From Tubulanus polymorphus (Eukaryota; Animalia; Nemertea): a DNA stretch of 64,000 nucleotides. Of this stretch, positions 7,001 through 64,000 are shown one piece after another. The notes beneath the pieces were generated by a model. That model saw only the letters and a list, made by a program, of their open reading frames with translations, did no database searches and was not told the origin of the DNA. The position numbers were made by a program, and so were the translations under genes. Numbering within the stretch: the first letter of the stretch is position 1; the number at the start of each line of letters is the position of its first letter. The stretch lies in contig NC_134033.1 in assembly GCF_964204645.1 (NCBI RefSeq), forward strand, positions 8,006,655 through 8,070,654, written 5' to 3'.

Positions 7001-10000
7001 AAAGTTTTTGTAGAGTTTTGAAGTGTTAGTTTTCAAACAACTTAGTCTTAAATGACTATGAAAAATAGTAAATAGTAAACGAATATGAATCTATTTATTC
7101 TTAAGCGAGATCGAAATCTGTGATTGCTTATAAGACACTGTATAGTATGCTTGTGGTGCTGAACTATAGGTGAACTATGGAGCAGCAGTAACAGTGCTGA
7201 GAGCTTAGCATAGTGTACTTCAATAGCTTCATAGCAGCGGATTGAAATCTGCATCTTCAATTTGATCGATTTAGCCTATTCAAATTACTCATTGATTCTT
7301 TGAAGTAGGTTTATGCAATAGACAATAGATCCTTTTACCTCCCTGGCCAGTTTCAAAGCTGTAAAACAATCTGGCATTGAGATATAACAGAAAATACACG
7401 CAGTTTCCTCAAAATTCAACGCATTTCTATAGATGCTATTTCTCAGCTCTGCCTTTAATGACGTCGCAGCGCGCACCTGCTGATTTAGCCGACTCTGAAC
7501 AGTAAGCGATGTCAACAATGAAATGAGGTCAAAAATCTTGTTACAAAATCACAAATTGCGCGTAAACTAAACACCCCTGCTCGCGATCTCCGGTCGCTCT
7601 GGTCGTTGCGAGCAACAGTTTCTTTTCCCAATCTTTTGGAATTGCCTTTTTCATCCCCGATAAGGTCTTCACTTGTAGATTCATAATGAAAATATGACCG
7701 GACTCCAACCAACAATTGCAATTGGGCCGTCAAGTGCTGCCACCATGTGATACCTGGCAACCAGTCTTTACATCGTCATCGTTGTAAAATGTTTTTTGAT
7801 AATTTTAGGACATTTATAGTGATTTCTAGCATTTGCAGTGAGGTTTTATCATATCAAACATAACGGCAGAATATCATAATTTACCAATTACCGATTCTAA
7901 CTAGCGCCATCAAACGAATAATTCAAGATCTTGAATTTGTCGATATCCCGTATCAAAACTACCACAGAGGAGTGCCTGTCGCCTGAACATCATTGTTAAT
8001 TGAAGCATCACTGATAGAGAGAACACAGCCTAAAATTTATACCTTGGCTAATGTGTATGGGCTATACCATTATGGAAATAAGGGTGGGTAGGAATATCAT
8101 TGGGCTAATGTCTGGGCGATTACACAATGCTGTGTAGGGAAGGTAGGTATAAGGTAGGCTAAGAGCTACGTACAACTACAATACAACGTCAACCATGCAT
8201 CTTATTATTAAGACAGTCTTAAAAATCTTATTGAATTGAAACTTACAGAATTAAACCATGATGAAATTGTTCTATTTCTTTACTTAATTCCACAGAGGAA
8301 TTTTTCAGGGTTTTGGGAAAATAGAACCACTTTTAGCTGGGAGAAAGTGTCTGTTTAACGGTTAAAAAAAAAACAGCCTCGATACGGAAACCCTCTAGGG
8401 GTCAGATTGGTAGTGATCTGTATGCTTTTTGGCCGCACACAGATCACAACGATCATTGTTAAATCACAGGGATGAAAATCTTCTGTCCAAAGATGGATTT
8501 CCGACCTTATAGTTTCATTTCCATCATTCTTGAGAACAGTGTAAATCCATTACAAAAAATTTTTGTCGAGGACCGTAAACAATTGTATCTTTTTCGCCTT
8601 ATTTGACTACAAAATAATTCTTTGAAAAAGATAGAATGCAATATATATGAAATAGAACTCTGAATTCACGAATTGAAAAGATAATTTATAGGCAATGCCC
8701 TTGCTCTATATCTCGCTGTGTATACAGCACTGCTGTCTCGACTACACACTAGCCTACTATAAGTGCTAACTCGGGGTATTCCCAAGAATACAGCGTATTT
8801 GAATGACGTAGTTTGCATAGATATGTGAAACCAGCTGACATTACTGGTGATTTCCATTGCATGAAGAAAATCCCTCACTCGCAGCGCTTTCAAGAAATAA
8901 AATCCGGGCTAGCGACTGACAAACAGCAGAGACCACCCTACCGTCAGTGTTAACCACGAACTGCGCAATATCTATGAACTACTTTAAGTAGTTCATAGAT
9001 ATTGATTTATCTTTTGACTGTTGTAGACTCAATCTGGAGATTGATCATGGCCACTAATGTACTTTGCTATAGTTGTTGGCCATATTTCACTTCGGAAGGG
9101 TGCCATTTTATGAATCTCTGGCCTAAGTTGCACTGGTGGCAAAACCTCCAGTACAAGTGTGAAATTTTATTAGCTAAACTACGCTACCATTTTGCTATTT
9201 TTTAGAGATGCTACAGAGCCATTTTTCGTCGTTCGGGGACATCGAGAAAGCAGTTGTTGTCAAAGATCCGAACACGAACAAGTCGAAGAAATTTGGTTTC
9301 GTTACTTTTAGATCGATGGAATCTGCGGATAAATGCCTCGCGAGTGACCGAAGTCCAACCATCGATGGAAAACCGGTTAGTTTCAATTTGTTCTGGGTTC
9401 GTAGCGGGCTTTGAATTCAGCACTTTGGTGTTGAAAATTATAAAAGTCATGCGCCCCTACAAAAAATTGATTTGCTCGTCCCAATAAGTTGAAACACTAC
9501 CGGTACCTCAATAATAGTATAAATAGAGTGAGTCGGACAAAACTTCATGCCATATAAACTTATTACATACGTCAATTATTGTAGAAGTGGCTCACCACGG
9601 AGCAGGTAGGCCTATAAATACCTGGGGTTTCCCGGCATGATATAAATAAAAAAATCGATGAGCGCCAAGGTCCTGACTCTGCAGCCTCAGCCGCTGAATT
9701 AACAAAACCAGCGGCCTCAATTTTTCAAGTTTCAATGCCAGTAGATAAACTTTTGCAGGGAAGAGAATTCCCCGCGGATCCGCGGTTTCCCGCTGATTTC
9801 AGTATTGAAAAATATCAATTTTCCAAATAGTCCAAAAATGATGTAAAAGTATGGGGGGGGTGTTGATCTCACTCAATTGGTCTGGCGCGATTGGTAATCA
9901 GGTGAACCGTCTTACTGTTGCCACCGTCTTACTGTGTGTGGCGAACGCCTTCAGATACTATACACTACTGGGTGATGATTTTTAGTGAGCATTCATCGGC

Positions 10001-13000
10001 GCATTTTAACTGCAATAATTCAGGGCTCGACCCGTAATGCATGAGATGCTGAATGTAATCGAAAGAGGATGTACCACATTGGAACTAGCCATTACCCAGG
10101 GTTCGTAGCGATCCTGGAAAGTGCTTAATAGTGCTTGAATCACAAAATGCGTTTTCAAGGCCTTGAAAATGCTTGAATTTTCAAAATTTCAGTAAAAATC
10201 ATTGGAAGTCCTTGAATTTTTAATGTTGTCCAAATTTTGTCAATTAGTTTGTTGTTGTATTGACTTCAATACGCCCGGGCACTGCCAACCACGTGTGAGA
10301 GTGCTGTGACTCCGTACTGTCAGCGTGCTATAGACTCCTATACACTGCTGACTTGTGTATATATACAGTACAAATGTATTAGGCACGTGGCTCACTGCTG
10401 ACAATGCGTATACAAATCTATTAGTAGACACGTGGCGGCACTACCGCTATCGCGCGCCACGTATATACAAATGCCGTTGTGATGAAATAAACAAACAAAA
10501 TACTTCAAAATAATTCTAAATAGATTATTGGTAGTAAATAATGACTTCAAATTAATATAAAGACCGTTCTAAATTTTGACAATCTTTGGAGCATTAACTA
10601 TCGAAAAGTGATTTTTTATGTCCGGGTATCCCGAGCTGATCATGATTAAGCGTTAAGATGTTATCATTTAGACGTTTAAGCCGGTCATCGAAATTTGGGC
10701 GCTATTGCACTTAGTACCCCCCTCCCAAAAATGTTTATTTCAGCATATTTATTATCAGGCAGGTCTAGGGATTCAAAATCAGTAACTTTTGACCCAAAAA
10801 GAAACTTACTTTTACTTGATTAAAATTTAGATATTTTGGCCCTAAATCGCGTGTAAAATCGCCGATTTGCGACGTCAACAACGCCATATTGGATGTCAAT
10901 CAAAGTTTCTAACCCTCTACTGAAATGTCATGACATTAAAAATTTGCAAAAGCCATGTTTTCAAACTTAACCATCTCTGAAAATGATGTGTATGTTTGCA
11001 TTATTTTCATACTTAGCTATTGATCTAAAGATGTTCTGATGAAGAAAAGTTATATGCCCAAAACGAAATTTTATCAAATCAATTCAATTACATTTATTGA
11101 TATACATTTTTTCAGATGTTTTTAGGTGGTAATTAGTGCGGAAACATGGCCGACCCGTCGGTTTGAATCGAGGAAATCGGCCCCAAATTATCAGAATTTT
11201 GGCTAGGAAAAAATTTTTTTTGTCAAAAGTAATTTATTTTGACTCTACAGACCTCCCTGATTCATAATATACAGAAATAAAAATTTTTGGGAGGGGGTAC
11301 GAAAGTGCAATAGCGCCGAAATTTGTTGGATTCAAAATTAGATAGGCCAGTATGGGAAAGTGCCATTTCTCTGTGCCATTTCTCTGACGCCTGGTTGGTG
11401 CATGAATCATACAACAGTTGGATTCAACGCAGACAAATTACAACAGAAGCTAGGTGAAATCTGGCAAAGTGAAACTCATGAGCTCATTTTAAAATCTGTG
11501 ACCATGAGAAATTCGGCTAAAGACAAGTCACATGAGTTGGCCGATGTAATTTCAGCCATCAAAACTCAAAAGGACCAAATTAATCGATTGTAAATAGGTC
11601 GGTGAGCTGTAGTTTGATTTTGTATGATTTTGTTGTTTTTGCTTTCGATAGTATGGCTTTTTGATGGCGAGGTCTACCTGTAGTTCCGTTGAAAGGCCCA
11701 CAGATTTCTTGTTTTTAAGTTATTAATTTCTGATACATGTAGTAAATCTTTCTTAAAATAAAGCTGAAAGATTCCAAAGTTATCAAGTGCTCTGCTACGC
11801 GTGGATGTTTCTTTATGATGATTTGCGTTTGTACTTATTTTAAATTTCTGCAATAAAGGAATTTTCATTGCAATAAATTCGCCTTAAATACTAGTGTTTA
11901 TATGGTATTTTTCAGAAAATAGTACTTGAATTTTGTTGAAATAGGTCCTTGAAAGTACTTGAATTAAGTTGGGCCTGGAGGCTATGAACCCTGTTACCTT
12001 CCAAAATATAATAGTCGTTCATGGGTTCAAGATCGCCCTAAGTCCTCGGAAAACGCTTTTAATTCCTAAAATTTCCTTGGGGGAGTTTTTCAAACATTAG
12101 GTTACCATATGGAAATAAATTTAATGCTTGCTAAGCTTTATTTATATCTAAATTATATAAATGGAATTTATCAAACTGGAAAAACATCAAACCATTTTGT
12201 GCACGTAAGACCACTAATCACCGGCAGGAAGGTGCTTCAAGCAAACTGCCGACGATCACTTACTAGTCAAAGAATATAAAAATTACCGAACTAAAACTAC
12301 AGTAGTTGATTATGATCCCAATTGCTGGGAAACGCATCTGAGCAACTACAAATCAGGCGCTGGAAAAATTGTTTATGTCCTTATTAATGTAATTGGGAAA
12401 AAATTGTCGATTCAAGGTCGTTGACAAGCGAGCCGCGAAGTGAGTGGGGGAGCTCAAGGGGGTATCCCTCTAATTCTTAATTACCTGTCCTGAAGTGTTG
12501 TGATTTCAGTGAAGATAGCACGGTAATTAGAGCTACTTATGATCTTACGATCTTATGGTGTAGTTCAATATTAATCATATCATGCCGGCCAAATGTACCG
12601 ATTGAAAACTTTTTCTTGGGATTCATTGAAATAAATCTTATTTTTTTATGAAAACGGCCAACCGACCGACTACTATGATGAGCTACATATGTTTGAAGTC
12701 AAGTGTACATCGTGTGAAAACATGCCTTGACGTGTGGCCTAGTTTAAGTTTTTTTTGGGGGGGGGACTAGCAGTGTTCCAATAACCTGCCATTCATTTTT
12801 TAGTGACTAGGTCTATATTAAAGCTGGTAATGTAAAAGCGCGCATATATACAATGTACTGTTTCATTTTGCACAGGATGCTCTAGCGGCAGTTTAGGTCT
12901 ACAGTAGAACTATATTAACTTCAATTACGTTATTGTAGAGAACATGTTCGCATTTTAACAATGCTTACAACATCACAACAAATAGAAATAATTTTTTTAA

Positions 13001-16000
13001 ACATGGGAATATGTCCGGTTACCGGACATAAATACGGCCCAGCGTGATGCCTGCAAATAGAAAATTTTTCCGGGGGATTTTCTACAGCGCTCGTTCTTGC
13101 GTACATACCGCCCCTGAGAATTTTATTACAATGGAGAACCCTGGGAGACATACATGGCGTTGCAACTACACTGATAATATTTTAGTAACAAGTGATTTTG
13201 ATGTTGTTTCTAATGCTATACGTTTTATTTTGAAGGTTGAAGTCAAGCGAGCTATTCCAAAGGATATTGTAAGTGACTTTGATTTTTAATTTGATTTTAG
13301 AACACAAAAGAATCTTTTGATTGAGATATGACATGTTCAGCTTATAATTCAATCATGTTGAACTGCAAATTTATGTGCGGGGGTTGGGAAAAAACATTTA
13401 GATCTTAATGGCAAACGTCTTCTGCGTACATCAGCAGATTTTATGACTAAATAATGAATACATATCTTGCAAACTGTGCACAAAAAAATGGTAATAGCCT
13501 CTTCATCTAAGAAAAAATCAACTGTTTGGCCACAGTTTGACCCATGGATTCAGGTTGCAGAGGCCTAGCACGTTTACTGCCAAACACTTAATGTGGCTTG
13601 CTTCTAAACACCAAAATCAGGTTTATGTATTTCTGCGCGTGCTAGCCTTTAAAAAGATTGTAAAAAGCCTGTGCTATAATTATTGCACTGAAAGTATTGA
13701 TTATTGAGTTTATGGGCACATTAAAAAGGCTGCTTTATTTCATATGTTCAGATGCCAGGTGTGATGAAGACGACAAAGCTGTTTTTAGGTGGTCTACATA
13801 GAGATGTGACTGAGGTTGATATCAGTGAGGCTTTCCACTCGTGTATATTAAACGTTCGAGTAAGTTTTCAATGTACACCTAAAATGATCTGGATCTGTTA
13901 TGACCGATGTAAATCCATCCGTATCATGAGAAATCCAGAGCCATCCCTTTCCATCACCTTGAGTTTGGGGAAACCCGCTATGCCAAATGTATGTTAGTTC
14001 CAGTCAATTATGACCGGTCAGTTTAGAAATATGCTGATCGATGGATGTGTCAAGTGCTGTGGATTTGCTTTTCCGTATTAAACTGTTTAATATTTTCTGA
14101 TATGGCTCGACTATCTCCCTTTTTGGCGTTGAAACTTGACGCGCGGTTGCTCACTTAAGCATAGAATTTAAAAAGTCTTTGTTTCTGGTCCCCAGGGATG
14201 AAAATTTCTCGCTTTTTAGCGGTGCCCGTTTTTAAGACAAGCTTTCCAAATTGTCCAGATCCATAGAGAAATTGATGAGGGGGGTGGAAGGTGCTGCCAT
14301 CTGGTATTGCTTTATAAACTGCTGTGAAAAAATATCCAGTTCGTGCTGCCATCTAGGATTGAAACGAGACCGCTTTTTTCATAATCCCTGGTTCTCATCC
14401 CTGGTCCCGCTAGTATGATTTTTATAGATAGAAAGGGAAATTTTTTTTTTTCTTAGAGGTGTTCAACACATCAAGGTGATATGTCCAGAGAGTCCAAAAG
14501 CATGTACAGCATATTGTCAGTTAAGTTATAGGCCCTATAGGACAGACCAGTCTTTTCTACACATAAAATGAAATCCTTCGATGTCACCTCCATTGATAAG
14601 ACAAATTGAAATTGAATATAAAATAATTCTCTACCAAACAACAAACTTTACTGTGAAACCTTTATTTACAATTCTTTTTATAAGCAAACAAGTCTGATCC
14701 TCTTTCGTTTTGTTGCCAGTTCGTTATTAATAGGTTCTTCATGCTTATAATATCCTCTAAATCCATCATCGCGATCTGTCGGCAGCCACTATTGTATCAG
14801 TCACATTAATTACAGCAGAGAACCAATGCAACTGTTTGGCTCAAAACAGGGATATTGTGTTTACAAATACTTTCTATGCATTTCGATTTGTTTTTCATTT
14901 CAACCAAAATAAAGGGAGCGTTCACAAATTACGTACCTCAAAATCTCCTGTTTTTCTGACCCCCCTCCCCCCTTGTACCACCTTTGTACCAAATTCACTG
15001 ACCCCCCTCTTAGGTACGAACCATCGCACCCATGACCATTTTCATTTGAGTTAGGTACATAAAGTACGTACCAAGATTGATTAATACCCCCCTCCCTCAT
15101 TCAGTAAACCCCCCCCCCCCCCCCCCCCAATGGAGGTACGTAATTTATGAACGCTCCCAAAGCAAATTTATTGCAAAAGGAGGTTACGCAACATTATCGA
15201 TATTTTCACAGCAGTGCCTGCTGCGCTGTGGTATAGTAAGGAGCTGCTCAGTGTATAGGTTGCCCCAGTGACAGCCGGTTGATCTATGTATCGTATGCAT
15301 GCTTGTGGGAAGCCAAGTGTATGATGGCTCATGCCAGCAGTCTTGTGTAATGATAACCCTGATATAAACAACAAAACAGAGTTTTTCATAAAAAATAACT
15401 TTTTTCTATCAACTATAAGAATTTTGTTGTCTCTCCTGCTAAGTTTCCCATAAAAACTTTAGGGTCGGCACCTTTTTGATCGCGTCGGTTGGGGGACTGG
15501 TTCCAAAGACTTATCTATTTTATGCCTTTTTTTAGGTCTGAACTGTTTGATAATCTGACCCATATGAAAATTATTCAACAGTCATGGAATTTGACTTAAG
15601 AAGCCTATCGAATTGGTCATGGAGTTGGTGGTCATGGGTGCTGTAAACCCTGTGTTGGAATCGAATATTTGATGATCTGTTTTTTCGTTTGTAGGTGACC
15701 GATGTTTTCCTTGTCAAAGATAAAAATACAGACCTATCGAAAGGTAACGTTATCTCGTACACTAGCCCTATGTACTCAACTCCTCTGAGACAAAAATCAT
15801 GCGTAACGATTGTTAATAATAAAATGAACTAATTAGAAGTGAATGAGATAATAATTAATTAATTACTCTCACAAAAATTAATTGAATCGGGGCTGATATC
15901 GCTACGAGTTTGCATGCCCGGCAGTACGAGCCAAATCGCCGTTATCATAGTCCCACGGGGCAATGGGGTCGACAAAACAATCTCGCTCCCCCTGGCTGCC

Positions 16001-17695: not shown

Positions 17696-17731
<36 letters not shown>

Positions 17732-20625
17732 TAGCGAGACGAGCATTATTATATGAATAATTGAAGAATCATTATATTATCATCTCTCATATATTATTGT
17801 TGTTCTTTATCCTACGTTGGTCTGGTCCTTATGACACACACACAATATAGGTTTTGGTTTTGTGACATTTGAAGATGAAGATCATGTAGCGAAAGTAGCT
17901 ATGGCTCGTTATTTCTCACTTAAAGGCAAAAAGGTCAAGTTTAACACAAATATCAGTCCTGATATGTTATTACTATTATTTAATTATTATAATTTGTCGT
18001 TGATTTTATGATATAAGATTAACTTCGAAGTAGTCCTCGTTCTGGTCGATTAATCACGTTTTAATTTGTCATTTTGTGTGATGTAAAAAAATGTTTCTTT
18101 GCGTTCGGGCGTCGCGATCGATTTAATCCGCGGCGTCCGGACGCCTAGTAGCAAGCAACATCGGCAGATGGACATTTACAACTGGCAAAGGCATGAGTGG
18201 GCACGTAGTTTCTTTTCGTTGGTTCAACTACAAACACAATGCGGCAGGAGCTGTTGATCCCATCCAATTCCTTGCCGGTTTCAATGGCTGAAGTGCTCTG
18301 GAGACCCAGTAACCCCATTTACCCGCCCATTCCGTTAAAACCTGAATGTACTCGGCGGTGTGATGCTGTTCATGATTGGTTGTCCAGAAAATTAACCTCG
18401 CCTGACTTTCCCTCCCAATTCCTTTGAATTTAATTCCTGTTAATACGAAATATTAAATCCATGGAGAAAATCAGGTATGCGTTTTTATAGTCGATGAAAT
18501 AGAGTATACTTAAAAATTGACCAAATTCTTTGTGGTTTTGTTACAGTTTGAAGCAAAAGGTGCAGAGCCGAAGGGACAAGACTTCTCTGGTGGTCGTGGA
18601 GGTCGCGGTGGTGGAAGAGGAGGTAGAGGAGGAGGACGTGGAGGCTATGGAGGTGGCTGGGATCAAGGTAAATTCGGAACCATACGGATAACAAACCTAT
18701 TAGACAAATCTCCCTCGGCATGGATTTAAACCTGATGACATCATAAGATTGCCTCAGTGCAAACCCCTGCCCCTGTAGACACATCCCTCAAAGGGATTCA
18801 AAGCTGATGACAAGAGACTTATTACAGTACAAACCCCTACCCAAGGTCTACCCTCATCATGGATTCTGAATCCTATGAGTCGTACTACATGTCTCCTTTT
18901 TGTTACTTGGGATTGACTTAACTACTTGGGTGTTTGGTATACCAGTAGTTGAATGGCAACATAATTGCAAATGTGGTTCGCCTGCCACTAGCTTGGCTGA
19001 TTGTATGTTATTGTGATATTAAAGGAGGATATGGTGGTGGCTATGACGGTTATGGAGGCGGATATGGATCGTATGATCAAGGATACAACGGCTATGATCA
19101 AGGAGGCAATGGATACGGTAATTATTGAAAATTGATGGAAATATGTATGATCATTATTATTACCGGTAATTGGTTAGATACTCAATAATGTCTCAAGTCA
19201 GTTCAAATCTATCGGTTTCAATCGATATATGAAATGCTCCTAGGGATTTATATGAGAAAAACAGCAGAATCTCGCCATTTGATAGATGTACAGTAAAACT
19301 GGCATAACTCGGAAATGTTGGGACCACTGTAAAATTTTTAACTTAAAAAAAATCTGATTCTGAGTAGTAGGATTTTGGGGGTTTTCTGAGAAAAATCAGA
19401 GTTAACTGGTGACACGGGGTCAATGTGTCCGTCGAGAGAAAAGTCGGTCTACCGTTGTATAATATGTTGCGCGCTGGTGAAGATCTTTTTAAAAGAACTG
19501 ATATTAGATGTCTGACTGAAAGATTAAAAAATGCATTGCTTTGAAACTTTCGGAACATATATCCTAGCCGAGGTAGTCGAATTTCCGACTTCTAGAATGG
19601 GACTTTGAGACAGATTTTAATGGGAAAATGAACTGAAAAAATTGGGACCTTGAAATTTCGGCCAATTTTGTTGATTTTCAGACTTACGCCAGTTCTATTG
19701 TATCTCATACGATTGTACCTGGTTAAAACGAACTTCATTGTCCTAGAATATGTGTTAGTTATTAACCAATATTCCTATGCAATGAAAAATCATTACAACA
19801 AGCTTCACGTAGCCAGGAAAACTTTGTTATAATAGAAGTAGAATTTGTTAAACGCTATAATTCCATGAGCAAAGTTCAAATGCGCATCATAACCCATGAA
19901 CCTTGTTTCAACTGACTTTGGAACTGTTCATAAAGTATATATGCACAAAATTTTGAATCCTCACATCATACTATATTGGCAATGACCTGCTTACCTTCGC
20001 AAATATTTACCATCTAATTTACGAAACAAACCTATGTCTAGGTCAATGAAGTGTGTCTATGTGTTTGGTTTAAATAGCTACCAAGTTAGTACGCAGATCA
20101 TACACTTAATAAGATCAAGCTACAAGCTATACGCTGCATGCATACATGCACATTCCCTTGATCATAGGCCTATCCCCATAACGAAGTGTAGATATAGCCG
20201 TCTTGGCAGCCATTTTGAATTTTCTTTGTGCGATAGGCCTACAACCTACAATTCTTGATGGATTTTCATGATACTCGGTGTGAGTATTGGGCCAGGTGAG
20301 CTGTCCACCATTATTGAAAATCGAGGTTATTGGCCACCAATTATGAGCGCTAATACATCCCGGGGAGAGAATTGCGGGGTATTTTAGGCCGCAAGGCATT
20401 AGTCTAGTTGTAATGGTATGAAAATGATTTAACTACAATCAGCTTGGAAAGAAGTTGTCTAAAACACATTAACAGTTTACACATTTCAGTTTTATTTCAT
20501 TTCAAGATTACGGAGGCGGTAGCTACGGAGGTTATGGAGGCGGCAACTTTGGCGGTGGTAATTACGGAGGTTATGGCGGCAGTGGATACGGTCGCGGTCG
20601 AGGTGGACGCTACAATCCATACTAG
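4002..20625 (+). CDS. hnRNP A/B-D family RNA-binding protein (2 RRMs + RGG + Gly/Tyr-rich low-complexity tail with C-terminal PY motif), ~280 aa, 11 coding exons
   Basis: GT-AG exons: 4002-4007, 4542-4561, 5242-5282, 9206-9375, 13236-13268, 13752-13859, 15695-15743, 17851-17933, 18547-18667, 19025-19117, 20507-20625. They sum to 843 nt with consistent phases. Motifs: KVFIGHL / KKFGFVTF (RRM1), VEVKRAIPK, KLFLGGL / KGFGFVTF (RRM2), GGRGGRGG, and ...RYNPY*. The first two micro-exons are less certain. AATAAA at 21021. Confidence 0.93.
4041..4371. mobile_element. MITE with ~70-bp TIRs; partial second copy at ~6130-6373 and an isolated terminus at ~22644
   Basis: tagttagttacctaatcg...agggatgacaagg is inverted as ccttgtcatccct...gttaactaac. 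The internal sequence is shared with 6130-6373. Confidence 0.8.
4570..4860 (+). mobile_element. tRNA-derived SINE-like repeat, interrupted by a MITE
   Basis: A-box tggtctagtgg and B-box ggttcgaatc. An uninterrupted homologue lies on the - strand at ~31120-31300. Confidence 0.7.
4612..4736. mobile_element. 125-bp PIF/Harbinger-like MITE with CTG TSD
   Basis: TIRs gagccagttgctcaaaagt / acttttgagcaaccgaccc. CTG at 4609-4611 and 4737-4739. A degraded relative lies at ~41050-41160. Confidence 0.75.
10097..11993. mobile_element. Non-autonomous DNA transposon, CAGGGTTC...GAACCCTG ends, 5-bp TSD TTACC (hAT5-like)
   Basis: TIRs with subterminal (g/c)ttgaa repeats at both ends, and TTACC on both flanks. 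A related left end occurs at ~47707. Confidence 0.75.
10698..11317. mobile_element. Nested MITE, GGCGCTATTGCACT TIRs, 8-bp TSD GAAATTTG (Merlin-like)
   Basis: Perfect 8-bp direct repeat at 10690-10697 and 11318-11325, and imperfect ~50-bp TIRs starting GG. A right-end fragment of the same family lies at ~59890-60057. Confidence 0.8.
14193..14403. mobile_element. MITE, CAGGGATGA TIRs, 5-bp TSD GTCCC (hAT5-like)
   Basis: gtccc|cagggatgaaaa ... ttctcatccctg|gtccc. Confidence 0.8.
14914..15158. mobile_element. PIF/Harbinger-like MITE
   Basis: TIRs gggagcgttcacaaattacgtacc / ggtacgtaatttatgaacgctccc, with 3-bp AAA flanks. Confidence 0.75.
16233..17644. mobile_element. Non-autonomous TIR element containing a nested Harbinger MITE
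   Basis: TIRs ggcgttctctcgactgacgcaaaa / ttttgcgtcagtcaagagaatgtc. No clear TSD. Confidence 0.55.
16768..17307. mobile_element. PIF/Harbinger-like MITE, TSD TAA; partial copy at ~12585-12880
   Basis: taa|ggccatcccaaaataa ... ttattttgggatggcc|taa. The interior is homologous to 12600-12870. Confidence 0.82.
19291..19700. mobile_element. Tc1/mariner-pogo-type MITE (TA TSD)
   Basis: ta|cagtaaaactggcataactc ... gacttacgccagttctattg|ta. Confidence 0.6.
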
Positions 20626-24433: not shown

Positions 24434-24450
24434 ATTATGGCGCTATCATA

Positions 24451-25662
24451 GGGGCTCGTATCAGAGTTGTAGGTAATGTAAAAACGATAATCTGTTAATC
24501 CAATGTATATAGTATGTATAAAATAACAAGGGGGCTAACGACGCTCACAAACTACTCAACTTCAGTCGCTTACTATTTCGTTATTTCTCATCCGATTTTG
24601 ATAATCCAGGTATGATATGAAAGCTAATAGCTTCCTGCTTCTAACGAAACTAGTCCCGTTAACTTTCAATGAATAGTTCATGAAAAATATGTCTTTGAAC
24701 GCGGACCGAAATCGCCTGGACCGAAAATGCTATGACGCCGGTTTTCGTCGATTTCGAAATTTCAAACGTTGAGTTCGACGCGAAATCCTTCACCGATTTT
24801 GATGATCGAAGGCTTCAAATGCGCAAAACATTCTATATTTTCTAAATATTGCGGTTGTTTCGTTGATCCATACGATATTCCAGCTTTGCAAACGCGAATT
24901 TTTCGATTTTCGTCAATTCACGCACTCGACACGCGATCTCAAAATGGCGACCTTGAACTTGAACTAGCAACAGGTCCGCAGTGAATTTTATTTCGTAACA
25001 ATTCAATCAAATGATATTTTATCTTATTTAAGCTAGAATAAACACGATCAGGTTATAATAGATTCTGAATTTCACGTAAATATAGACAGAAAATAAATTG
25101 GAAATAAAATTCATTTCGGTTCAGCATTGCGCTAAGCATTGTGGGAGATGACAGTCGCCATTTTGAGATCGCGCATGGGGTTCGTGAATTGACGTAAAAT
25201 CGGAAAATTCGCGTTTGCAAAGCTGGAATATCGTATGGATCAACGAAACAACCGCAATATTTAGAAAATATAGAAAGTTTTGCGCATTTGAAGCCCTCGA
25301 TCATCAAAATCGGTGAAGGATTTCGCGTCGAACTCAACGTTTGAAATTTCGAAATCGACGAAAACCGGCGTCATAGCATTTTCGGTCCAGGCGATTTCGG
25401 TCCGAATTTCGCGTTCAAAGACATATTTTTCACAAACTTTTCATTGAAAGTTAACGGGACTAGTTTCGTTAGAAGCAGGAAGCTATTAGCTTTCATATCA
25501 TGCCTGGATTATCAAAATCGGATGAGAAATAACGAAATAGTAAGCGACTGAAGTTGAGTAGATTGTGAGCGTCGTTAGCCCCCTTGTTATTTTATATATA
25601 CTATATACATTGGATTAACAGATTATCGTTTTTACATTACCTACAACTCTGATACGAGCCCC
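24451..25662. mobile_element. Foldback element: ~500-bp near-identical inverted arms around a ~200-bp spacer, TA flanks
   Basis: ta|ggggctcgtatcagagttgtagg ... cctacaactctgatacgagcccc|ta. Mirror ORFs 24769(+) and 25337(-) are nearly identical. Confidence 0.93.
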
Positions 25663-25940
25663 TACAATAATTAAACTATTCGCTGTGGCTACTTGTACGG
25701 ACCCTTACGGATTTCTCTGGAGGCTATTCGTATGGAACTAGGATCTGTACGCTAACAACGAAGTACGGTCAAGTCGGCCCACTGCCAACTCGTCCCAACC
25801 AACTCGGCCCACCAAGTTGGCCCATTTCCTGCGCAGTTTAAATGCAGCAATCTTTGCAATGTACTGTACTACAGTATAACTCGTTTAATTCGTATCAAAT
25901 AGGAGAACATAATTCGGATTTTGTTTAATACACTCCCACG

Positions 25941-31300: not shown

Positions 31301-32871
31301 ATCGGCCGAATGTTTTAACTACAGCCTTACCTTACCCTAACCTATCCCTTCCGGTACGAACATTCCAGAGTAATCCGTACGCGTGTGTACGAATAGCCTA
31401 CGGAATTATTTTTTATTTGTACGTGTCCGTACGAATAGCCACTTCGTGAACTATTATATATAATATTGAACTATATTTAATACGTGAAAGTTAAATCGAT
31501 TTACAAAGATTCAGTTTCGTAAAAGCGCTTATGGGTTGTCATGATTTTGACAGTGATACTCTTGTTGTAGCTTAGAATTATCCCTGTGGCTCTGGTTACA
31601 GAGTCCGTAAATGGAGTGCGATAGCTCCGGTTACGGAGTACAGTTTTAGCGCATGTGCATTACAGTAAGATTCTGAATTGTAATATTGGGATTATATATT
31701 TGATTAGATCGAGATCAAACCAAAAAGTAGTAGAGCACTTTACCCACTGCGCCACAGCACACGACTGGAGGTTGGGTGAGTTAATTTATATAAAGCCTCA
31801 CCTTACCAAAACCCTAATCCTTCACACATGCGCATACGTAGATATAGTGCAGATTACTCCATAACTGGAGCCATTATGTAAAATTATCCCAGATGTACAA
31901 CTAGGGCAGGCCTATATACAGTCAACCCATATATACCGACCCCTCCCATATAGGCCTACCGCCACCCCACCCTCACACCAGGTTTTTTCAATGAATGGAA
32001 CATTAGGCTTGAAATCTAAAGATGGTAAAAGTGCAGATCCACACCTCTTGCAAATTTTTAATCAAATGTATTACAGATCACAAATGATATTTGAAAAGTG
32101 TTTGAAAGAAACTTAAAAAGCCTCAGGCCCTGTACAGCAAGGCCTAGTAGCTACTAAAAATTTCTAGGTGGTTACAGGTAAAAATAATTAGGGATGTTCT
32201 TGATGAGACTGTATTACCTGGGACACTGGATGATCAAAGCTACAGTTCACCCCAATACATCTACAACGCCACTAGCCCCTGTGCTCTTCACCCAGTCGTG
32301 AGAGGGGTCGGTTTGAGCCTGAGTCCAAGAACTGTTGTCTCCTATGACTTGTTGAAAATAACTTCTCATTCTCAGTCGACACGTTTAATGCTCGGTGCTT
32401 ACCAACTACGATTTCAATAAATAAACTAGGCCCTACCTACACTTAACTTTTCATTGTTAAGACTTTCAATAATTATATATTTGAAGTGGCTAAAAATTGT
32501 CACCAAAAATATTTTAGTACGTCTTTTGTTTTCACTCATAAACGCGTCAACGCTTGCCAGCATGAAAAATCAGTGTCTTAGCAACACAACAATAGATGCT
32601 GCTCTGCGTGACTCGTTGAATCTCATACATGAAATACGACAAACTAATCAAATAAATACAACAGTAAGAACAAGAAATATCAGAGGTTTTTAGGCCTGAT
32701 GATAGTTTGCTTGAAATTAAAGTTGGTTAAGATTCAAGGAATGAGTGAGGGAGGGAGTGAGTGAGTGGAAGTGTCAAACGGAGGAAAACAAGCTCACAGA
32801 ATTAGAATAATGGGCGGGGGGTACCAGTAAAGCGAGAAAAACTTTTATTCAAATTAACACATTTATCCATA

Positions 32872-46760: not shown

Positions 46761-49700
46761 TCAGCATATTTCGTATTCGCGGAGTGCGTTCACGTCAACC
46801 GTCACTTCTTCTGACCGTGTTACCGTCACGTGCGGAAAGTCTCGCCGTTTATTTTTCTCTGATTTCCGTTTGCCGGTGCGTTGCCCAGATGTCGACGACG
46901 AAGCCATCGATGATGATCGAGACGATGAACCCGCCGCCGATAATCTACCCTTCAGACGATCTTTGATCTTGGCCGCACGGTTTTTACGGAATTGTTTATC
47001 GTCATTCGGGTGTTGTCGGTGCTCGGGTGATTTCGATCGCAGCTCAACGGAATTTTTATCGTGGAACACGCGATCCGGCGAACACTGTTCCATGTTGTCG
47101 ACGAGGGCGCTAGTGGCCAGGCGATGTTGACGCCGGCGCCACCACACTATTAGCGGCACGACCGTTATTAACGCGATCAGAATAACTACGAATACGGCTA
47201 ATGTGGCGGTACCCGCTCCGGAACCTACAAATATATAATACTACATTAAGAGCGTGAATGTATCATATGAACTAGCAGTCCAGGGACACCACGCCCATTC
47301 GAGAAGTGGTACAGAATGAGGAAATTATAGCGTTATAACAGTAATAAATCAAATAAATATCAAACTGTAATAAGAGCCCCACTTTTCATGAATGGTTCTA
47401 TGAGTAACTAGAAAGAATCTTTCTATGTGGTCAGGTTAGAAAAAATTTTGTTCGAAGACACTCAGTGACAGTTACGAACTCTACCATTCAACACCAGACC
47501 ACTGCCACGTGAGAACAAGGCTTGTACGCCGATACGAGGTCACAGTCTACGTTCCCTCCTAGTTGCCGCGCCAATCCATTACTACTCCGTTGCATAATCG
47601 TCTCATCAACATACCTTAACATCATATTGCAGTGCAAGTGTGACACAGAGGCAGGATCATAACGAACGAACCGGATCGTTGCAAGCGTTTGATTTCAACC
47701 ATATACCAGGGTTCGTAGCCTCAAGACCAACCAAAATTCAAGGCCATTTGAGATGCACATTCAAGGCTTTTTACCCCCATGAAAAACATTTTCACGGCAA
47801 TATTTCCTCGCTTCATCCATTCAAAAACAATCAAAACAGCTAACAGGGTTTATTATGCCACTGCTGACCCGAATTCACTGATATTCACTGACACGGCCAA
47901 CAACAGCAACTTCAAGAAATTTGATAATTTTGAGCCAGTGACTGAATGCCTACACTAATGACTTTTTAATTGGTTGAAGTACAGATTTTCTTGGAAATAT
48001 AACGGAAAAAATAAGTGTGAAAACTGTATTGGGTTGAATTCAAATGATGGGAGAAAACTTACTTTTTGCAAATAATCAAGATGGAAATACCAAGAAAAAC
48101 ATCTTTTAAAAAAATTAAATCTGATGTTAACACCAACCAGATGTTTTTGGCGGGATTTTTGGCCTCATATCATAACCAAATACACGTTTTTAATTTAAAT
48201 TTCATCAAAAAAAGTTTTTTAGGCCTACGATATACAATACAACAAGTAGCGGCACACCTCAACGAGTAAGAATTCTTTTTTTTAGAAAGGCCAATCACCA
48301 CAGCCATATCGGTGCGCAAGAGTCAAGGGACTCAAGATGTCATATCCCGATATGACATCAGGCAGGAAAATTATGATTTTTTTACAGAATTCCTTCAATT
48401 TCTTCTTCTGAAATAAATCAATTCTTTCTTTCAACAAACTCAGGAAAGCGCAACAAATTTCAGACTACCTGAGCAAGTTACAAAGCTATCTTATATCAAA
48501 TAACAGAGAAAAGTGGGAAAATGAAGTGCAAGTCGAACCACTAAAACATCGTGGTCGGTGTTGCTACGCAACCCGACCACAAAAATACAATGTTTCTATG
48601 TACACAGTACAATCATTCTTTTTAAGTAACCCAGACAGGGAGACGGCACGAACACATACTTCAGATCACATTTTTTCCTGTGTCTCACTCATTGATTTGA
48701 ATGCATAATCAAATTGAATCGGATTTGGTGATGTTTTGTTCTTTTTTTGAAACTTTGCACAGGGGCTTGCCACCAACTACATTATCAGTAACACATTTCC
48801 ATAATCAAATCTGCTTCATTTAGAAGTTTATCTGACATTATCTTTTTCATGTATTAAGCATCCAAGAAAACGAATATGGCCGCCAGTCGTATAAAGTCAA
48901 TGAAATATCAAGAAAAGCCATAAATACACTTTCTCAACTTCCCAATTCAAGCTATAACTTGACCCAAGTGGAACAAAAATATAGAGAAGCTTTTTTATCA
49001 GATAAATGCTGGTGGGGGTAGAGCTGTGATGAGATTCAGAATACTTACTCATTGGAGAACAGCTATATGAACTTGAAATGGTCACGTTGCTGTCGATGAA
49101 ATATGGTCCTGGTGAACTTTCAACATGGAACTCGGCCTGTTACACAAAAATACGCAACAATCAGCTCATTACCAATAATTTTTCAAGTAAATTTGAAGTA
49201 GAAAATCATCCAAATATAATAAAATGATGTTACCAATTCGATAAGATTGACTTCTCTACATTAAGTGTTTGGTATATCAATTTACAGTAAATTGAAATGA
49301 AACACTTGTTAAAAGTAGATTCTCTAACCAAAATACAGAATAAATTGAAATACAGATGACCTGTGTAATTCCAGTAGAACCTACTTAATAAATCCGGATC
49401 ATTTCTGACCTATGAAATTCATCTAGTTTGTAAGAAATTTAGATGAAACATCATATTTTACATGCATAAAACTGTGGACTGTAAATAATACCTGGATTAA
49501 ATTAAAACCTGGCATATATGATTTGGAGTATGTGGGTTTGACTAGTGGAACCTCGTTGATACAAGTTCCCGGGGCAATTATTTGTATTAACGAGAATTTG
49601 TAACATGCAATTTGACGTAAATTTCCTGCCGATAGATAAAGAAAATAGAGAAAGATAAAAGAGAGATAAAACGATTGAATGGTTTAAACTCAAATTTGGT

Positions 49701-52700: not shown

Positions 52701-55700
52701 CGGAGGTGATAAAACCAAAATATTGAATTGTCGCGTGGGACAAAACCAAAATATTGAATTGTCGCGGGCGACAAAACCAAACTGATGAATTGTCGCGGGC
52801 GATAAAACCAAAATAATGAATTGTCGCGGGCGATAAAACCAAAATAATGGATTGTCGCTGGTGATAAAACCAAAATATTGAATTGTCGCAGACGATAAAA
52901 CCAAAATATTGAAGTGTCGCAGGCGATAAAACCGCGACAAAAAAAAAAATTGTCGCGGGCGATAAAACCAAAATAATGAATTGTCGGGTGCGACAACACC
53001 AAAATAATGAATTGTCGCGGGCGATAAAACCAAAATAATGAATTGTCGCGGGCGATAAAACCAAAATAATGAATTGTCGCGGGCGACAAAACCAAAATTA
53101 TTGTTTTGTCGCGTTATTTTAGTTTTGTCGTTTTGTCATAATGTCGCCCTCATTTGCATATACGTGTTTTTTTTACGCATGGCCCTTATCAGCCACCATA
53201 CTAAAGCCTTAAGGTCGCGTAAAACTCGATAAACACTTCAAGCGACACAGCGAACGATCTCCTTTCCCCAACAGCGAACGCTTAACCTAGTAGAGGCTAC
53301 TAGCCTATGTAGGCCTATGTAAATGCGTAGGCCTAACATCCGGACAGATTGGTCGTAGGTAGGCCTATTGAATAACAACCCACCTAAATATCGTAAATTT
53401 TGTTTTGAAGTTCAATCCAATGAGTCCGTTGATAAACGCAACAATTATACTGTGTTTGTTTGAGACAGTAAAGCTCAGTACCGGTAGGCCTAAAGCCGCA
53501 TCAAACTCGATAAACACTTCAATCAAGCGACACAGCGAACGATCCCTTTCCCCCACAGCGAACGCTTACTCCGAATGTCAATTGTGAGTCCAGCATACGG
53601 AAAGGATTGTGTTATATACTTGTATTTAGTAAATACCTTGTGCATTTGACAATGATCGGTATGTACTGTAGGAAATATAGAGTATTGATGGCATTGATTT
53701 AGAGGTTGAAGCCCGCGGCTGAATAAAGTAATATATTCTTTTATTTTGATACCTCGTCGACATAACAGCTTTTCTCCACTATATCTCTTCGGCGTGTTTC
53801 GTTTCATCTTCACCCGTCAAGGGATTCGAACCCACTACGCTAAAGCTGTTCGCCGAACCCCTTGACCTCACGAGTCGGAGTCGTTGGAGTCGTTACTAGC
53901 CGACCAGAATCCGGTCGTACCAATCACAGCGCTTGTAACAAACGACTTTAGGCTTCTATTGGTTTTCCCATTTAATGGACCAATCAGCGAATGTTTTACT
54001 GAACAAGGAAGTATTTCGCAAATCGATATATGACGTCACGCGCAACAGCACTAGTAATGAAATCACGCTTCGTGAGGCCTGGGGGCTGGTGGAAGCGAGT
54101 TCGGGGGTGTGATACCGGACCCCTGGCAAGCGAGGATGGTTTCGTTTAGGCCTACGACTCCCCGGTACACTTATGATTTATCTTAGTAAATACACGGTTA
54201 ATTTGATAAAGAAAAATAGGTATTGCTAAACTAACTGCATGACGCCCGCAGCCAAATCACTGGTAGTAATAAATTAATTTGTATTCGATTTGATTCCCAT
54301 GATGAGGTGAAACTCGCAGCTGATCCCCGGAACGACGATGTAGTGACACACGTCGATTCGTCGATGTTTACGGCTCGACAGTGCTTTTAAAATCTAAAGT
54401 AGTAAATTTCCTGTATATCGGTAATACGATTTGATGAGGAAAATGGGCTATTGTTAAAATTAGTTTTTAAAAACCGCGACAGAATGTGCAATCTTTGGGC
54501 AATAAATTTGTTAATTTATGCTTGAATTGATAATCGATGTGACAAGAAACGTGTGGTAGATTTCGGAAAGAGGACTTAGAAAAACATGTCGGCTCTTTGA
54601 ATGGGACTCAATTTTCGACAGTGCTTTTGTAACGATGATTCTTCGAAATACGCACGGGGTATTTGTAGATCGAAGTGAGCTGAATGATATCAGACGGATT
54701 GTATCGACAACAGCGTCAAGGTAACAAAGCCTTTGTTCTTTTAGTAAAAATAGTGTGGAAGAAAATAATAATAATAATAATCACGCGGATATCAATAGGG
54801 TTTTCTGTGAAATAACAGAAAACCCTAATAATAGAATTGGTAATACCATGCTATCATATAACTTTAAACTAACATCAACGTCGAGCGAATATTCGCTAAC
54901 CTTTTTTAAAACAGAGAACATAGCCCGCTGCGCTTGGTTTGCTAACGCTTTTCGGCACTGAGCAAAAGACCCGGTATGGGAGAATAGTATACCCAAATAC
55001 TTATAGTTATATACTAACTCCAACACTCGACCGTTTATATTAAACTCCGGAGGGTATCAGAGTCTTCGTTTCGAGAACATCATTACTTTTGTTTTTTCGC
55101 AATTTATTTGTAACTTCCATTCTTTACAATAAACATGCAGGTTGTCAATCAATTTCTGAAGTCCCTGTGGACTCTCGCTCATAAGTACTGTATCGTCTGC
55201 GTACATAAGGATCATCAATTTGACCCATGCATCATTACGCATGCGCAGATTTAGGGAGGGACAATTTTGAGCATCTAAATAGCCTTCCAGTTCATTTAAA
55301 TATATTGAAAAGAGCACGGGGGACAAATTTTCTCCCTGTCTGAATTTCATAAAACTTTCAAAGGCATCTGTTTTACTATCATTAGAAAATACACATGACT
55401 TGATGCCCTGGTACATGCTTTATATTACATTTAGAACTTTGCCCGTAACACCACTATTGATCATCTTATGCCACAAAGCCTTTCTCCATATGCTATCAAA
55501 GGCACGTTTGTAATCTACAAAAATGCGGTAAAGCTTGCGATTACTATTCAAAAACATATCCACAAATGACTTAAGGGAGTATATATGGTCCAGAATGCCG
55601 TGTTCATGTACATGCATCATTTCCCTACAATGCGTCAAGGTAATTACCAGCCAATAAAGTTAGCAATCATAATCAGGTCGACTCAAGTACCACAGTTACA

Positions 55701-57036: not shown

Positions 57037-59455
57037 AACTAGGGGTCCAGGGACACTATGCCAACTTGAGAAGTGGTTTCAGATGCTCAACAATTTCAAT
57101 ATTCAACGCCCCATCCAATGACCTCGAAAAAATCCAATGACCTTGAAACTCACCACAATTATAGAACATGTCAGCAACTACAATTTTGTAATTGATTGTG
57201 GTAACAAAATATGCCTAGTTACCAAAATGATATGGAAATACTAAGTTATTCTACTATTCAACGCCCCCTGGTGACCATATGCAAAGCCCAATGACCTTGA
57301 AACTCACCATAGTCATAGAACATATCATGAGCTACAACTTTGCAATTGATCATGGTGGCAAAATATGCCTAGGTACCAATATGATAAGGAAATACAAAGT
57401 TATTCTACTTCAACGCCCCCTAGTGACCATAATAGAATAACCAATGACCTTGAAACTCACCACAATCATAGACCATGTCATGAGCTCCAACTTTCCAATT
57501 GATTGTGGTAACAAAATATGCATAGGTACGAATACAATATAGAAATACTAAGTTAGGCCTATTGTATTGTTCAAGGCCCCCTGTTGGTCATATACAAAAA
57601 CCAATGACCTTGAAACTCGCCACGATCATAAACTATGTCAAGAGCTACAACTTTCCAATTGATTAATGTAACAAAATATACTTACGCATCAATATAACGT
57701 GGAAAAACTTTTTTCCACCTACGAATGAGTACTGATGACACCAAGATGGCCGCCAATTGCGTCATAATTGCCTGACCAAGAAATACCTGTCTCGGGTATA
57801 AAGATCCCATTCCAAAGAGTACCCATCAGCAATTGCAATGAAAAATGGCAAACCATTAGGAAGCTACAGGACTCAGAATTCAGGCCAAAATTGACATTTT
57901 TGGGCACAAAAAAGATTACAGAACGGCCATCTCGAGTACAATTGACCCAATTTTTCTTAAGCTGATGGGCCCTTGGGAGATACAAATAGCCTATATACGA
58001 AAGATCAAGGTAATTGATAAAAGCGTCTTCAAAATTTCCCTCAATAACTTCAACAAGAGCCCCAAGGGGCACTATGGCCACCCTGTCAGCTTTTCATAAA
58101 ATGGCAAATGATGCATTCTGTGGTTGAATTTGTCCTAATACACTCCCAGCTCATTAACTTAGTCAATCCCAGGCTAATATCGTGTTTTCATAAGTAGCAC
58201 AGACCATAGAACTCAAATCAATGGAACGCCAACTCACACGAGACTTCAATGTAGTCAATACTGTGAGCATTTTTTTGATTTGATTTTTTGATCTATGCAC
58301 AGACATTGACTGGAGTTGGCAGGAACAAATACCTCAGATAAATCTGTTCCCTTGGTCGTATTGAGTTGAATGTGGAATAGAATTGAATTTCCTAAAATTT
58401 GCTCAATAAAACAAAATTGAATTTGATTTGCTATTTTACCTTGTTCAATAAAGTAAAATTGAATTGGATTTGATATTTTTTGCAGAACAAGAGCCCCAAG
58501 GGGCACAATGGCCAGCCTGTCAGATTTGCTTTTTATAAATGATGTAATCTGTTGGTTATATTTATCAATATACACTCCCTGCTCAATATCATTTACATAG
58601 TAAAATCGTGTGTTAACACAGACAGCAGGAACGAATGTAATATAGAAATACGAAGTTATTGTATTGTTCAACGCCCCCTGGTGGCCATATACAAAAACCA
58701 ATGAGCTTGAAACTCACCAAGATCATAGACCATGTCATGAGCTACAACTTTCCAATTGATTGTGGTAGCAAAATATGCATAGGTACGAATGTAATATAGA
58801 AATACTAAGTTATTGTATTGTTCAACGCCCCCTGGTGGCCATAAACAAAAAACCAATGAGCTTGAAACTCACCTCGATCATAGAACGTCATGAGCTACAA
58901 CTTTCCAATTGATTATAGTAGCAAAATATGCTTAAGTATCAATTATGATGTGGAAAAACTTTTTTCCACCTACGAATGAGTACTGATGACTCCAAGATGG
59001 CCGCCAAGTGCGTCGTAATTGCCTGGTCAAAAATACCCTCTCGGATATAAAAGATCCCTTTCCAAAGAATACCCATTACAAATTGCAATGAAACATGGCA
59101 CACCATTAGAAAGCTACAGTACTCAGAATTCAGGCCAAAATTGACATTTTTGGGAACAAAAAAGGTCACAGTACAGCCATCTTGAGTCCGATCGACCCAA
59201 TTTTTCTCATGCCGATGGGCCCACGGGGGAAACAAATATATAGGAATTATCAAGGTTATTGATAAAAGTGTCTTCAAAATTTCCCTCGAAAACTTCAAAA
59301 ATGTGTAAAAAGTGCTGATTTTGGCGAACAACAATGGCTGCCAGTCGGCCATCTTGAATCTGACAGGGCCAGTTTTTGGCCTGAAGATGTGTCTAGGGTA
59401 GATACACGTATAAACCAAATATCAAGACATTACCTTGAAGCCTCTTCAAAACTTT
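57037..59455 (-). mobile_element. Compound HINE-like array (two copies of the 35415-36590 family, with nested aacaagagcccc..ggggcac ends at ~58051 and ~58487)
   Basis: aactaggggtccagggacac end, ~154-bp tandem units, and duplicated blocks 57700-58050 and 58950-59300. Confidence 0.8.
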
Positions 59456-59569
59456 GGAACTCTCACGAACTATCTAGATGGTTATCTCTCGACCTCAATA
59501 GCTTCAAGACCCATCTCAAAACAACTTTGTTCCATGCAGCATACCATTAACTCTCGGAAAGCGAATTGT

Positions 59570-61352: not shown

Positions 61353-62391
61353 AAAATGTGTAAAAAGTGCTGATTTTGGCGAACAACGATGGCTGCCAGT
61401 CGGCCATCTTGAATCTTACAGGGCCAGTTTTTGGGCTGAAGATGTGTCTACTGTCTAATAGCCTATTCAAAGTCCCTTCCAAAATACCAATCACAAATTT
61501 CAATGAAAAAATTACAAACCATTAGGAAGTGACAGGTCTTGGAATTCAGGTCGAAAATTACCTTGTTGGACACAAAAAGGGTCAAAGGTCAGGACAGCCA
61601 TCTTGAGTCCAATTCTATTTGGGCTGATGGCCTCTGGGGGCAACATATATAAATGATTATCGACTAAGACGTTTTCTTGAACACTTCAAAATGTGATGAT
61701 TTAGGCAAATGACAATGGCCGTCAGCCGGACATGGATTCTGTCTGACAGACAGATGAACGACAGACAGATGAGCGACAGACGAAAAGTGAATGCAATTAG
61801 CCCGCTTGGACTGTGTCCCAAGTGCACTCAAAATCAGACGAATATCTCATAAGACAACAATTGGTAAATTACCCACAATTCAAAATTACTCTCGAAAATT
61901 TCACTGGAAAATTACTTTCATATTCCCGACTGATTTGTGAAATAGGCCTATCTGGTAGGCCTAGTGCACTAAACCATATAGGGTAACTCACTGTAATTTT
62001 ATAAATGGCTTCTGTACTTACATGGAGTTACCCTTAGACTAGACTGATAACTGACAAAAAAAGTCTTACCCAAGCTAGCGTTGGCAAATACTACTGGCTC
62101 TGGTCTGCTGCCTAGAGACTAGGGCCTATTAAGCCTACTATATTCTAGGCTAGATGAGTTAAGTAATTCTCTCTTGTTTTGATGAAGACTCGTCGCTGTC
62201 ATTGATTGTGAATGAAATTCAACCATCATTCCTGGTCTACACGGTCCTTACTTCAGACCAGTCTGATTACATGATTGTCGACCTAGAAATAGTCAATACG
62301 ATATCATATCAAATCTAGCTAGGCCTATTCAGTATTCTGCTGCTATTTAAATTTGACTTGTATGTTCATGAATGATTGATGACAGATTCAT

Positions 62392-63382: not shown

Positions 63383-64000
63383 AGATTCATCAAGAAAAAA
63401 ATCGATGGTTATGTCGTGTATGATGCCGATGGGCGATGGTGGTATGAGTCACCCCCGTCCCACCCAGGCTGTGTCGGTAGTAACGCCTCAAACCCAGCTC
63501 ACCTTCGGCTTCTTACAACAGTAAATCCTCTTTATTCATTCGTTGGTGATTATGGCTTTTTTCGTCATAAATATCTTGGTTATCTACATTGAGTTAGAAG
63601 TAGGCCTAATTGCTAATAGAAATGATTCCTATTTTTCGAGAAAACTGCTCGTTAAAATATGGTCAATGTTGAGCGGCGTAGGCCTATACGATAATTGAAC
63701 GTGGGTTCGAATCCAAGATTTTTCATAACGTTAACGTTCTTGCAAATATCATTCTATTCTATTCCATTCCTAGTATTCTCTCATATATAAATAATCTCCT
63801 TTTTAAATATCAAAGATATCGCTCTTATGAAATACTCAAGCCCCTGGTTTCAGAATGGGGCAAATCTGGTAATAAGCCTCTGAGAGAAAAGGACAATGTG
63901 TTGTTGTGCCTGTTCTCTCGTTTGTATATTTTAATCCTTTTTATAGTAACATTTTGACAGTTTGTAACATTCTCAACAGATTATAATCATAATTAGTTCC

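Follow-up and report, generated by a model that had tools for sequence, protein, structure and literature searches.

TA-flanked TAGGCCTA scars, likely footprints of DNA transposon excision, in the genome of the nemertean Tubulanus polymorphus

The palindromic 8-mer TAGGCCTA occurs 17 times in a stretch of 64,000 nucleotides from the nemertean Tubulanus polymorphus (RefSeq assembly GCF_964204645.1, contig NC_134033.1, positions 8,006,655 to 8,070,654), which is referred to below as the window and corresponds to C9:8006655-8070654 of genome G000 (268 Mb, 77 contigs). Comparison of repeat copies identifies this word and its close variants as scars, i.e., recurrent and stereotyped insertions at TA dinucleotides, which occur genome-wide, are dispersed as well as locally clustered, decay by point mutation and are inherited within repeats. 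It is likely, albeit unproven, that the scars result from donor-site repair following the excision of a cut-and-paste DNA transposon.

A preliminary description of the window had listed 17 copies of TAGGCCTA, all of which were retrieved as exact matches, and had named a lack of enrichment over a Markov background as a possible refutation. The enrichment is upheld: Markov models of order 1 to 3 predict 0.47-0.84 copies, while dinucleotide shuffles predict 0.49 and none of 100 shuffles reached 17. With words from tandem arrays and homopolymer runs set aside, TAGGCCTA is the most over-represented 8-mer of the window, and among the NNGGCCNN contexts it accounts for 17 occurrences, with at most four for every other context. 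The shorter and longer variants, which had likewise been described as abundant, are raised within the window (TAGCCTA, ten versus 2.3-3.3 expected; TAGGCTA, seven versus 2.3-2.8; TAGGCCCTA, three versus 0.1-0.2). Genome-wide, TAGGCCTA is found 21,141 times, compared to 3,384 and 3,529 times for the control words of the same composition, ATCCGGAT and ATGGCCAT, respectively, whereas the 7-mers exhibit no excess at this scale (12,601 and 12,490, versus 18,121 and 18,096 for the reversed control word), and most 7-mers therefore represent background, with only some of them being scars. A literature search with the 8-mer returned primers and unrelated sites only. We know of no prior description of a scar that renders a single 8-mer approximately six-fold over-represented in a 268-Mb genome.

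The origin of these words by insertion was established from paralogues, using an all-against-all BLAST comparison of a sample consisting of the window and a further 59 loci of this genome (321 kb altogether), in which each motif site with paralogue cover was scored. Two insertions had been read from a pair of sister repeats of the window (57480-58120 and 58737-59365, 89% identical), and both are borne out: position 57554 represents a clean 6-bp gap, TA[GGCCTA], relative to the sister repeat, with a plain TA also present in at least ten further paralogous alignments, while 57987 represents a clean 5-bp gap, TA[GCCTA]. Across the sample, eight motif sites (five of TAGGCCTA, two of TAGCCTA, one of TAGGCTA) are restricted to a single repeat copy and correspond to a lone TA in all paralogues (three up to 59), and for one further TAGCCTA the paralogue reads TATA, which brings the total to eight or nine independent private events, at each of which both TA copies are kept, as in a footprint. 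The remaining paralogue-covered sites are either common to sister copies (inherited) or one substitution apart (decayed), and none in the sample lies opposite an unrelated 6-mer. Copies of one neutral repeat family contain nine private insertions with lengths of 4-7 bp, three of which are of the scar type, while a fourth turns TA into TACCTA at the same TA that bears TAGCCTA in another copy. The third insertion originally put forward, a frameshift at 29559, was also upheld, as the frame of a transposase-like open reading frame (ORF) changes exactly at TAGGCTA: frame 3 is open as far as the TAG of this motif (...IRKLLSLP*), after which the reading proceeds in frame 2 (YLPADLITNVF...), which fits a 5-bp insertion into CCA-TA-C. 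This ORF (29447-30004) did not match any Pfam family and is MULE-like by its motifs only.

The motifs are present in primary data. Reads were placed over positions 53200-59199, most of which is high-copy repeat, with a single-copy stretch at 55.6-57.0 kb that contains three variant sites. In this stretch the contigs of run X1 are without differences from the assembly, and the raw Illumina reads of another, independent sample (X5) show no indel at 55725, 56507 or 56636 among the indels listed. An assembly or sequencing artefact, which had been named as a possible refutation, is therefore a negligible explanation.

A further explanation would attribute the excess mainly to copy number, assuming that a few amplified repeat families happen to carry TAGGCCTA by chance in their consensus. 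Amplification is certainly visible, as the window sites 53360 and 54147, along with eight of the 17 paralogue-covered sample sites, are common to sister copies, while the 14-mer TACCGGTAGGCCTA occurs 333 times, mostly in central, repeat-rich chromosome parts. Furthermore, the density of TAGGCCTA is 266 per Mb in the repeat-rich window, or 3.4 times the genome mean (79 per Mb), versus 36 per Mb on a chromosome arm (first 2.8 Mb of contig C1). The repeats containing 53360 and 54147 are read at approximately 100 times the depth of single-copy DNA and carry the scars in other copies too; at 53355, 1740 of 2357 reads differ by nothing but a 4-base deletion, indicating that at least the scar at 53360 has been inherited within its repeat family. 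Other copies of the repeat that contains 54147 read ...GTTTCGTTTAGGCCTACGA across a 343-bp insertion (53796-54138), while the TACCGGTAGGCCTA site returned three exact-flank matches only across repeat copies, all with both motifs. Against such an explanation, of 50 TAGGCCTA sites taken with flanks of 12 nt from the initial 3.4 Mb of C1, approximately 45 lie in unique contexts, the contexts in the window are diverse, and private insertions occur in single copies, so that the motifs are not limited to the consensus of one repeat family. Amplification accounts for part of the count and not for the origin of the scars; as a sole cause it is refuted, and as the main source of the excess it appears quite unlikely. 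The 343-bp insertion itself is flanked by a target duplication of 9 bp (GTTTCGTTT) and contains, on the minus strand, a tRNA-like GGTTCGAATCC box, and is thus similar to a short interspersed element (SINE); approximately 2,000 reads that stem from further copies of its host repeat skip it.

The anatomy of the scars was analyzed in a 246-kb sample or at the unique sites of the 321-kb sample, as stated. The interior always consists of a G-run followed by a C-run, centred on GG plus CC, any extra base being G on the left or C on the right. At unique sites of the 321-kb sample, the numbers of G and C are (2,2) in 60 cases, (1,2) in 30, (2,1) in 25, (2,3) in 11, (3,2) in six and (4,2) and (2,4) in one each, some of the 7-mers being chance occurrences; the products thus differ by approximately one base, as is the case for products of end joining. 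In the 246-kb sample, TAGGGCCTA and TAGGCCCTA together amount to 13 occurrences versus one for TAGGACCTA and TAGGTCCTA, and neither TAGGGGTA (four) nor TACCCCTA (zero) is enriched. TAGGGGCCTA and TAGGCCCCTA were each encountered once.

During excision of the Tc1/Tc3 type, each flank keeps TA and approximately two tip bases as a 3' overhang. By analogy, the element behind the scars would insert at TA, duplicate this dinucleotide and possess 5'-GG(G)...(C)CC-3' tips, and its excision would leave TA plus approximately two tip bases as a 3' overhang on each flank. As the two GG overhangs would be unable to pair, end joining would fill in and ligate them to yield TAGG/CCTA, and one extra base would sometimes be lost or kept, giving rise to the shorter and longer forms. 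Scars would build up over a long time, while multiplication of the host repeats would copy them further. Footprints of IS630-Tc1-mariner elements (Tc1/Tc3, Sleeping Beauty and Minos) share the TA target, the retention of both TAs and the few intervening bases, plus or minus a base or two, with the scars described here, whereas the known families of this group have tips of the CA...TG type, as does the resident family described below, and the scars exhibit GG/CC. The canonical Sleeping Beauty footprint, in which terminal bases are located between TA copies, is among the subjects discussed in PMC5224488 and PMC6943129. Footprints of DNA transposons are treated as a measurable class of small indels in a genome-wide survey of rice, which ties them to Stowaway/Mariner, hAT and other families by two-species comparison (PMC4423477), whereas the present genome contains a single stereotyped scar for which a donor was not found. 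The scars would exemplify a known kind of process, and the scale on which it operates here is unusual.

Scars are clustered, with ten gaps of less than 300 bp on C1 versus 1.0 expected and five gaps of less than 100 bp in the window versus 0.4 expected, as expected of hot spots or local hopping. The base preceding TA is G in 33% of half-sites versus 17% of all TA sites, while C is depleted (chi-square 21.8). One-mismatch variants number 26 versus approximately 14.5 expected, i.e., an excess of approximately 11.5 beside 17 intact copies, and these decayed copies suggest a mean scar age near 8% divergence as an estimate. With mutation rates taken as 1e-9 to 1e-8 per site and generation, the accumulation of approximately 18,000 scars over approximately 8% divergence is estimated to correspond to 1e-4 to 1e-3 fixed scars per generation. 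The 'very active' element previously envisaged is thus not required, since a rate of this order suffices. A group of decayed motifs, which looks like an old hot spot, was observed in locus L039 (4490-4550; G000:C10:5010389-5010449), where TAGGCCCA, TAGGCCTC, TAGGCCCG and TAGCCTA lie within 60 bp. Clustering could also be taken as a sign that selection maintains TAGGCCTA as a palindrome with a binding function, e.g., for a promoter factor. This is, however, very unlikely, as the sites arise as exact 6-bp insertions within neutral transposon copies, decay by point mutation at an approximately neutral level and in one case break a transposase-like reading frame.

The interpretation of the scars as excision footprints, as first proposed in the preliminary description, stands with respect to the stereotyped insertions at TA and the fitting anatomy, but the TA/GG...CC/TA terminal-repeat family that it predicted was not found in the 321-kb sample by several terminal-repeat scans. 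Since the element is missing from the data, we infer its transposon nature, its tips and the 2-nt overhang chemistry. Several further observations weigh against an excision origin. The TA-flanked inverted ends of the GG...CC or CC...GG type in the sample all proved to be chance pairs or to lie inside longer palindromes; TAGGCC showed no recurrent continuation besides TA that would mark the end of an element; and a comparison of paralogues for large insertions flanked by TA duplications did not return any. The only verified TA-duplicating family, a Tc1-like one, has the termini TA/CAGGGTGTCCC, with CA...TG tips, and the bases between the TAs do not correspond to the tips of a resident TA-duplicating element in the sample. 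The scars far outnumber any plausible living copies of an element, and the Pfam mariner transposase returned no match, although it returned none in control genomes either, so that absence is not implied. The PIF/Harbinger-ISL2EU-Spy (PHIS) elements, whose terminal repeats usually begin with GG, form groups that are described as duplicating TWA, AT, ANT, CWG, TNA or nothing, and not TA (PMC4482050). A footprint of the PHIS/ISL2EU type, based on an AT or TWA duplication, is equally at odds with the counts, as the AT-flanked analogue ATGGCCAT is at the level of a control word and no other NNGGCCNN context rises above four in the window.

Transposases of TA-targeting superfamilies are nonetheless present in the genome, with eight matches to DDE_3 and 75 to the pogo-like DDE_1, the latter including at least eight equal-scoring copies with open frames of 741-775 aa (e.g., C5:13121760 and C7:10007561). 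PHIS-type transposases are abundant and recently active: DDE_Tnp_4, the Harbinger-type family, returned at least 371 candidate matches, with at least 14 equal-scoring copies that possess 400-aa open frames (e.g., C1:15911046, C3:13841358 and C9:8608326). Both the DDE_1 and DDE_Tnp_4 families are apparently recent. The source of the scars could belong to the IS630-Tc1-mariner/pogo superfamily, or to a so far undescribed lineage that duplicates TA within the PIF/Harbinger-like group, the tips of which are GG. The PHIS loci inspected as candidates (L048-L061) lack TA-flanked GG ends and were rejected. The TA-duplicating Tc1-like family mentioned above is young (L044-L047, e.g., G000:C1:20808494-20809938), and its copies are 1.44 kb in length, 98.4-99.2% identical to each other and terminated by TA/CAGGGTGTCCCATTAA, with a 360-aa open frame.

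The foldback at 24451-25662, which had been regarded as an element with exactly the required TA-flanked GG...CC ends, cannot be the source of the scars and represents a hAT-like non-autonomous element. It is multicopy (351 arm candidates at first look) and has the long inverted arms of a hAT-type foldback or miniature inverted-repeat transposable element (MITE), in the window at 24447-25666. The consensus ends of the family, based on 14 complete copies, are CACAGGGGCTCG...CGAGCCCCTGTG, with CACAGGGG...CCCCTGTG as tips; CACA precedes GGGG at the start in 11 of these copies and TGTG is found at the end in 13. Target duplications of 8 bp are perfect in eight of the 14 and near-perfect in a further two, and neither a TA duplication nor GG...CC termini are a property of the family. 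In the window copy, which is without a duplication, the tips are mutated to CATA/TACA and by chance read TA beside GGGG/CCCC. The foldback is therefore set apart from the TA-flanked GGCC scars by its 8-bp duplications and CACAGGGG tips. Two copies elsewhere in the genome are of separate interest. In L010 (871-1816; G000:C9:8781706-8782651) one foldback copy is inserted within another, exactly inside an older TAGGCCTA scar and with the 8-bp duplication GTATAGGC, while the interior of a 9.2-kb copy in L031 is unrelated and contains two open frames (560 and 381 aa) that adjoin each other on the minus strand (3385-6140; G000:C4:10823584-10826339), neither of which matches a Pfam family.

Other candidate termini were likewise rejected. 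For TA/GGGATGACAAGG at 4101-4302/6309, and for similar short elements in L036 and L056, the inverted repeat runs outward past the TA. The 28-bp hairpin TA/GGGTTTTCTGT...ACAGAAAACCC/TA at 54796, considered as a miniature remnant, forms part of a larger repeat and has the same flanks elsewhere, while TA/GGCCCACATG...CATGTAGGCC/TA in L039 (4494-6500) represents two clusters of decayed scars rather than terminal repeats. L036 also contains a 9.3-kb palindrome (588-9852; G000:C5:14501587-14510851) with near-identical arms, traced at many points, which may represent either a foldback of giant size or a fold-back in the assembly.

A second TA-flanked palindrome, TACCGGTA, occurs 12,039 times in the genome, versus approximately 3,400-3,500 for control words. 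When counted with flank anchors it occurs 5,266 times versus 1,366, and all 50 contexts listed are unique. In some places TACCGGTA and TAGGCCTA have a TA in common, for example at 53479/53485 in the window and in L034. An empty TA was found at none of the seven TACCGGTA sites with paralogue cover in the sample. Should TACCGGTA be a scar, its formation would call for another set of tips, CC...GG, which adds to the points against a single excised element.

The enrichment of this second palindrome of the same form, together with the missing source element, would also suit a process that does not involve a transposon. In such a process, a host or domesticated nuclease, for instance, would make a staggered break specific to TA, and the filling-in of this break would duplicate the TA, after which a G-biased template-independent polymerase would add approximately two G to each 3' end prior to ligation, so that the product reads GG followed by CC. 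The numbers of G and C (1 to 4, most often 2) and the restriction of extra bases to G or C are in agreement with such a process, whereas independent ends predict frequent mixed products, and the corresponding words TAGGGGTA and TACCCCTA are as rare as reported above. As we also know of no precedent for a TA-specific germline process of break and G-addition, we consider it unlikely. It is doubtful, if conceivable, that the scars were written not by an ordinary resident transposon family but either by a very low-copy 'hit-and-run' element that prefers open chromatin and leaves in almost every case, or by a host TA-specific break-and-fill activity that writes GGCC (and CCGG).

The scars and related features of the window are listed in Table 1. 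Apart from these, the window contains an uninterrupted ORF of the TMEM126 family (37639-38169, plus strand, 176 aa, Pfam E = 1.5e-15), with scar-type motifs located within approximately 0.7 kb upstream and 0.6-1.3 kb downstream, and, at 52079-53113, a 31-bp unit (GGGCGATAAAACCAAAATAATGAATTGTCGC) that is repeated 33 times in tandem, similar arrays being present in L038. No tRNA or Rfam feature was found in the window.

Table 1. Scars, scar-type motifs and the foldback element in the 64,000-nucleotide window.
Feature	Positions	Strand	Basis or remark
TAGGCCTA scar	9607..9614		exact match
TAGGCCTA scar	20165..20172		exact match
TAGGCCTA scar	20234..20241		exact match
TAGGCCTA scar	31951..31958		exact match
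TAGGCCTA scar	39476..39483		exact match
TAGGCCTA scar	48220..48227		exact match
Dense cluster in high-copy repeat	53301..53492		TAGCCTA 53301; TAGGCCTA 53310, 53328, 53360, 53485; TACCGGTA 53479
TAGGCCTA, inherited in high-copy repeat consensus	54147..54154		other repeat copies
TAGGCCTA, private 6-bp insertion at TA	57554..57561		plain TA in paralogues
TAGCCTA, private 5-bp insertion at TA	57987..57993		TA in three paralogues
TAGGCTA, shifts frame of transposase-like ORF	29559..29565		frame 3 to frame 2
TAGGCCTA pair, 13 bp apart (61943, 61956)	61943..61963		exact match
TAGGGCCTA 62120, TAGGCTA 62146, TAGGCCTA 62320	62120..62327		motif match
TAGGCCTA at 63601 and 63679	63601..63686		exact match
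TAGGCCCTA, 9-mer variant; also 32427, 56507	14529..14537		motif count
TACCGGTA, second TA-flanked palindrome; also 19161, 20633, 53479	9498..9505		word counts
Foldback element, not part of scar system	24447..25666		family tips, 8-bp duplications

Should the hit-and-run or break-and-fill explanation be true, the scars would constitute a distinct, sequence-stereotyped germline mutational signature, and, if no element exists, this signature would indicate a so far unknown TA-specific activity of DNA break and repair in the germline. If the TAGGCCTA scars are excision footprints, they would map, as a fossil record, tens of thousands of sites at which one mobile element once landed, and its target choice, hot spots and tempo could be studied without the element itself. 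They would also rank among the foremost kinds of small insertion in this genome, accounting for approximately one in three of the private insertions of 4-7 bp observed in a single neutral repeat family, and they are able to break reading frames.

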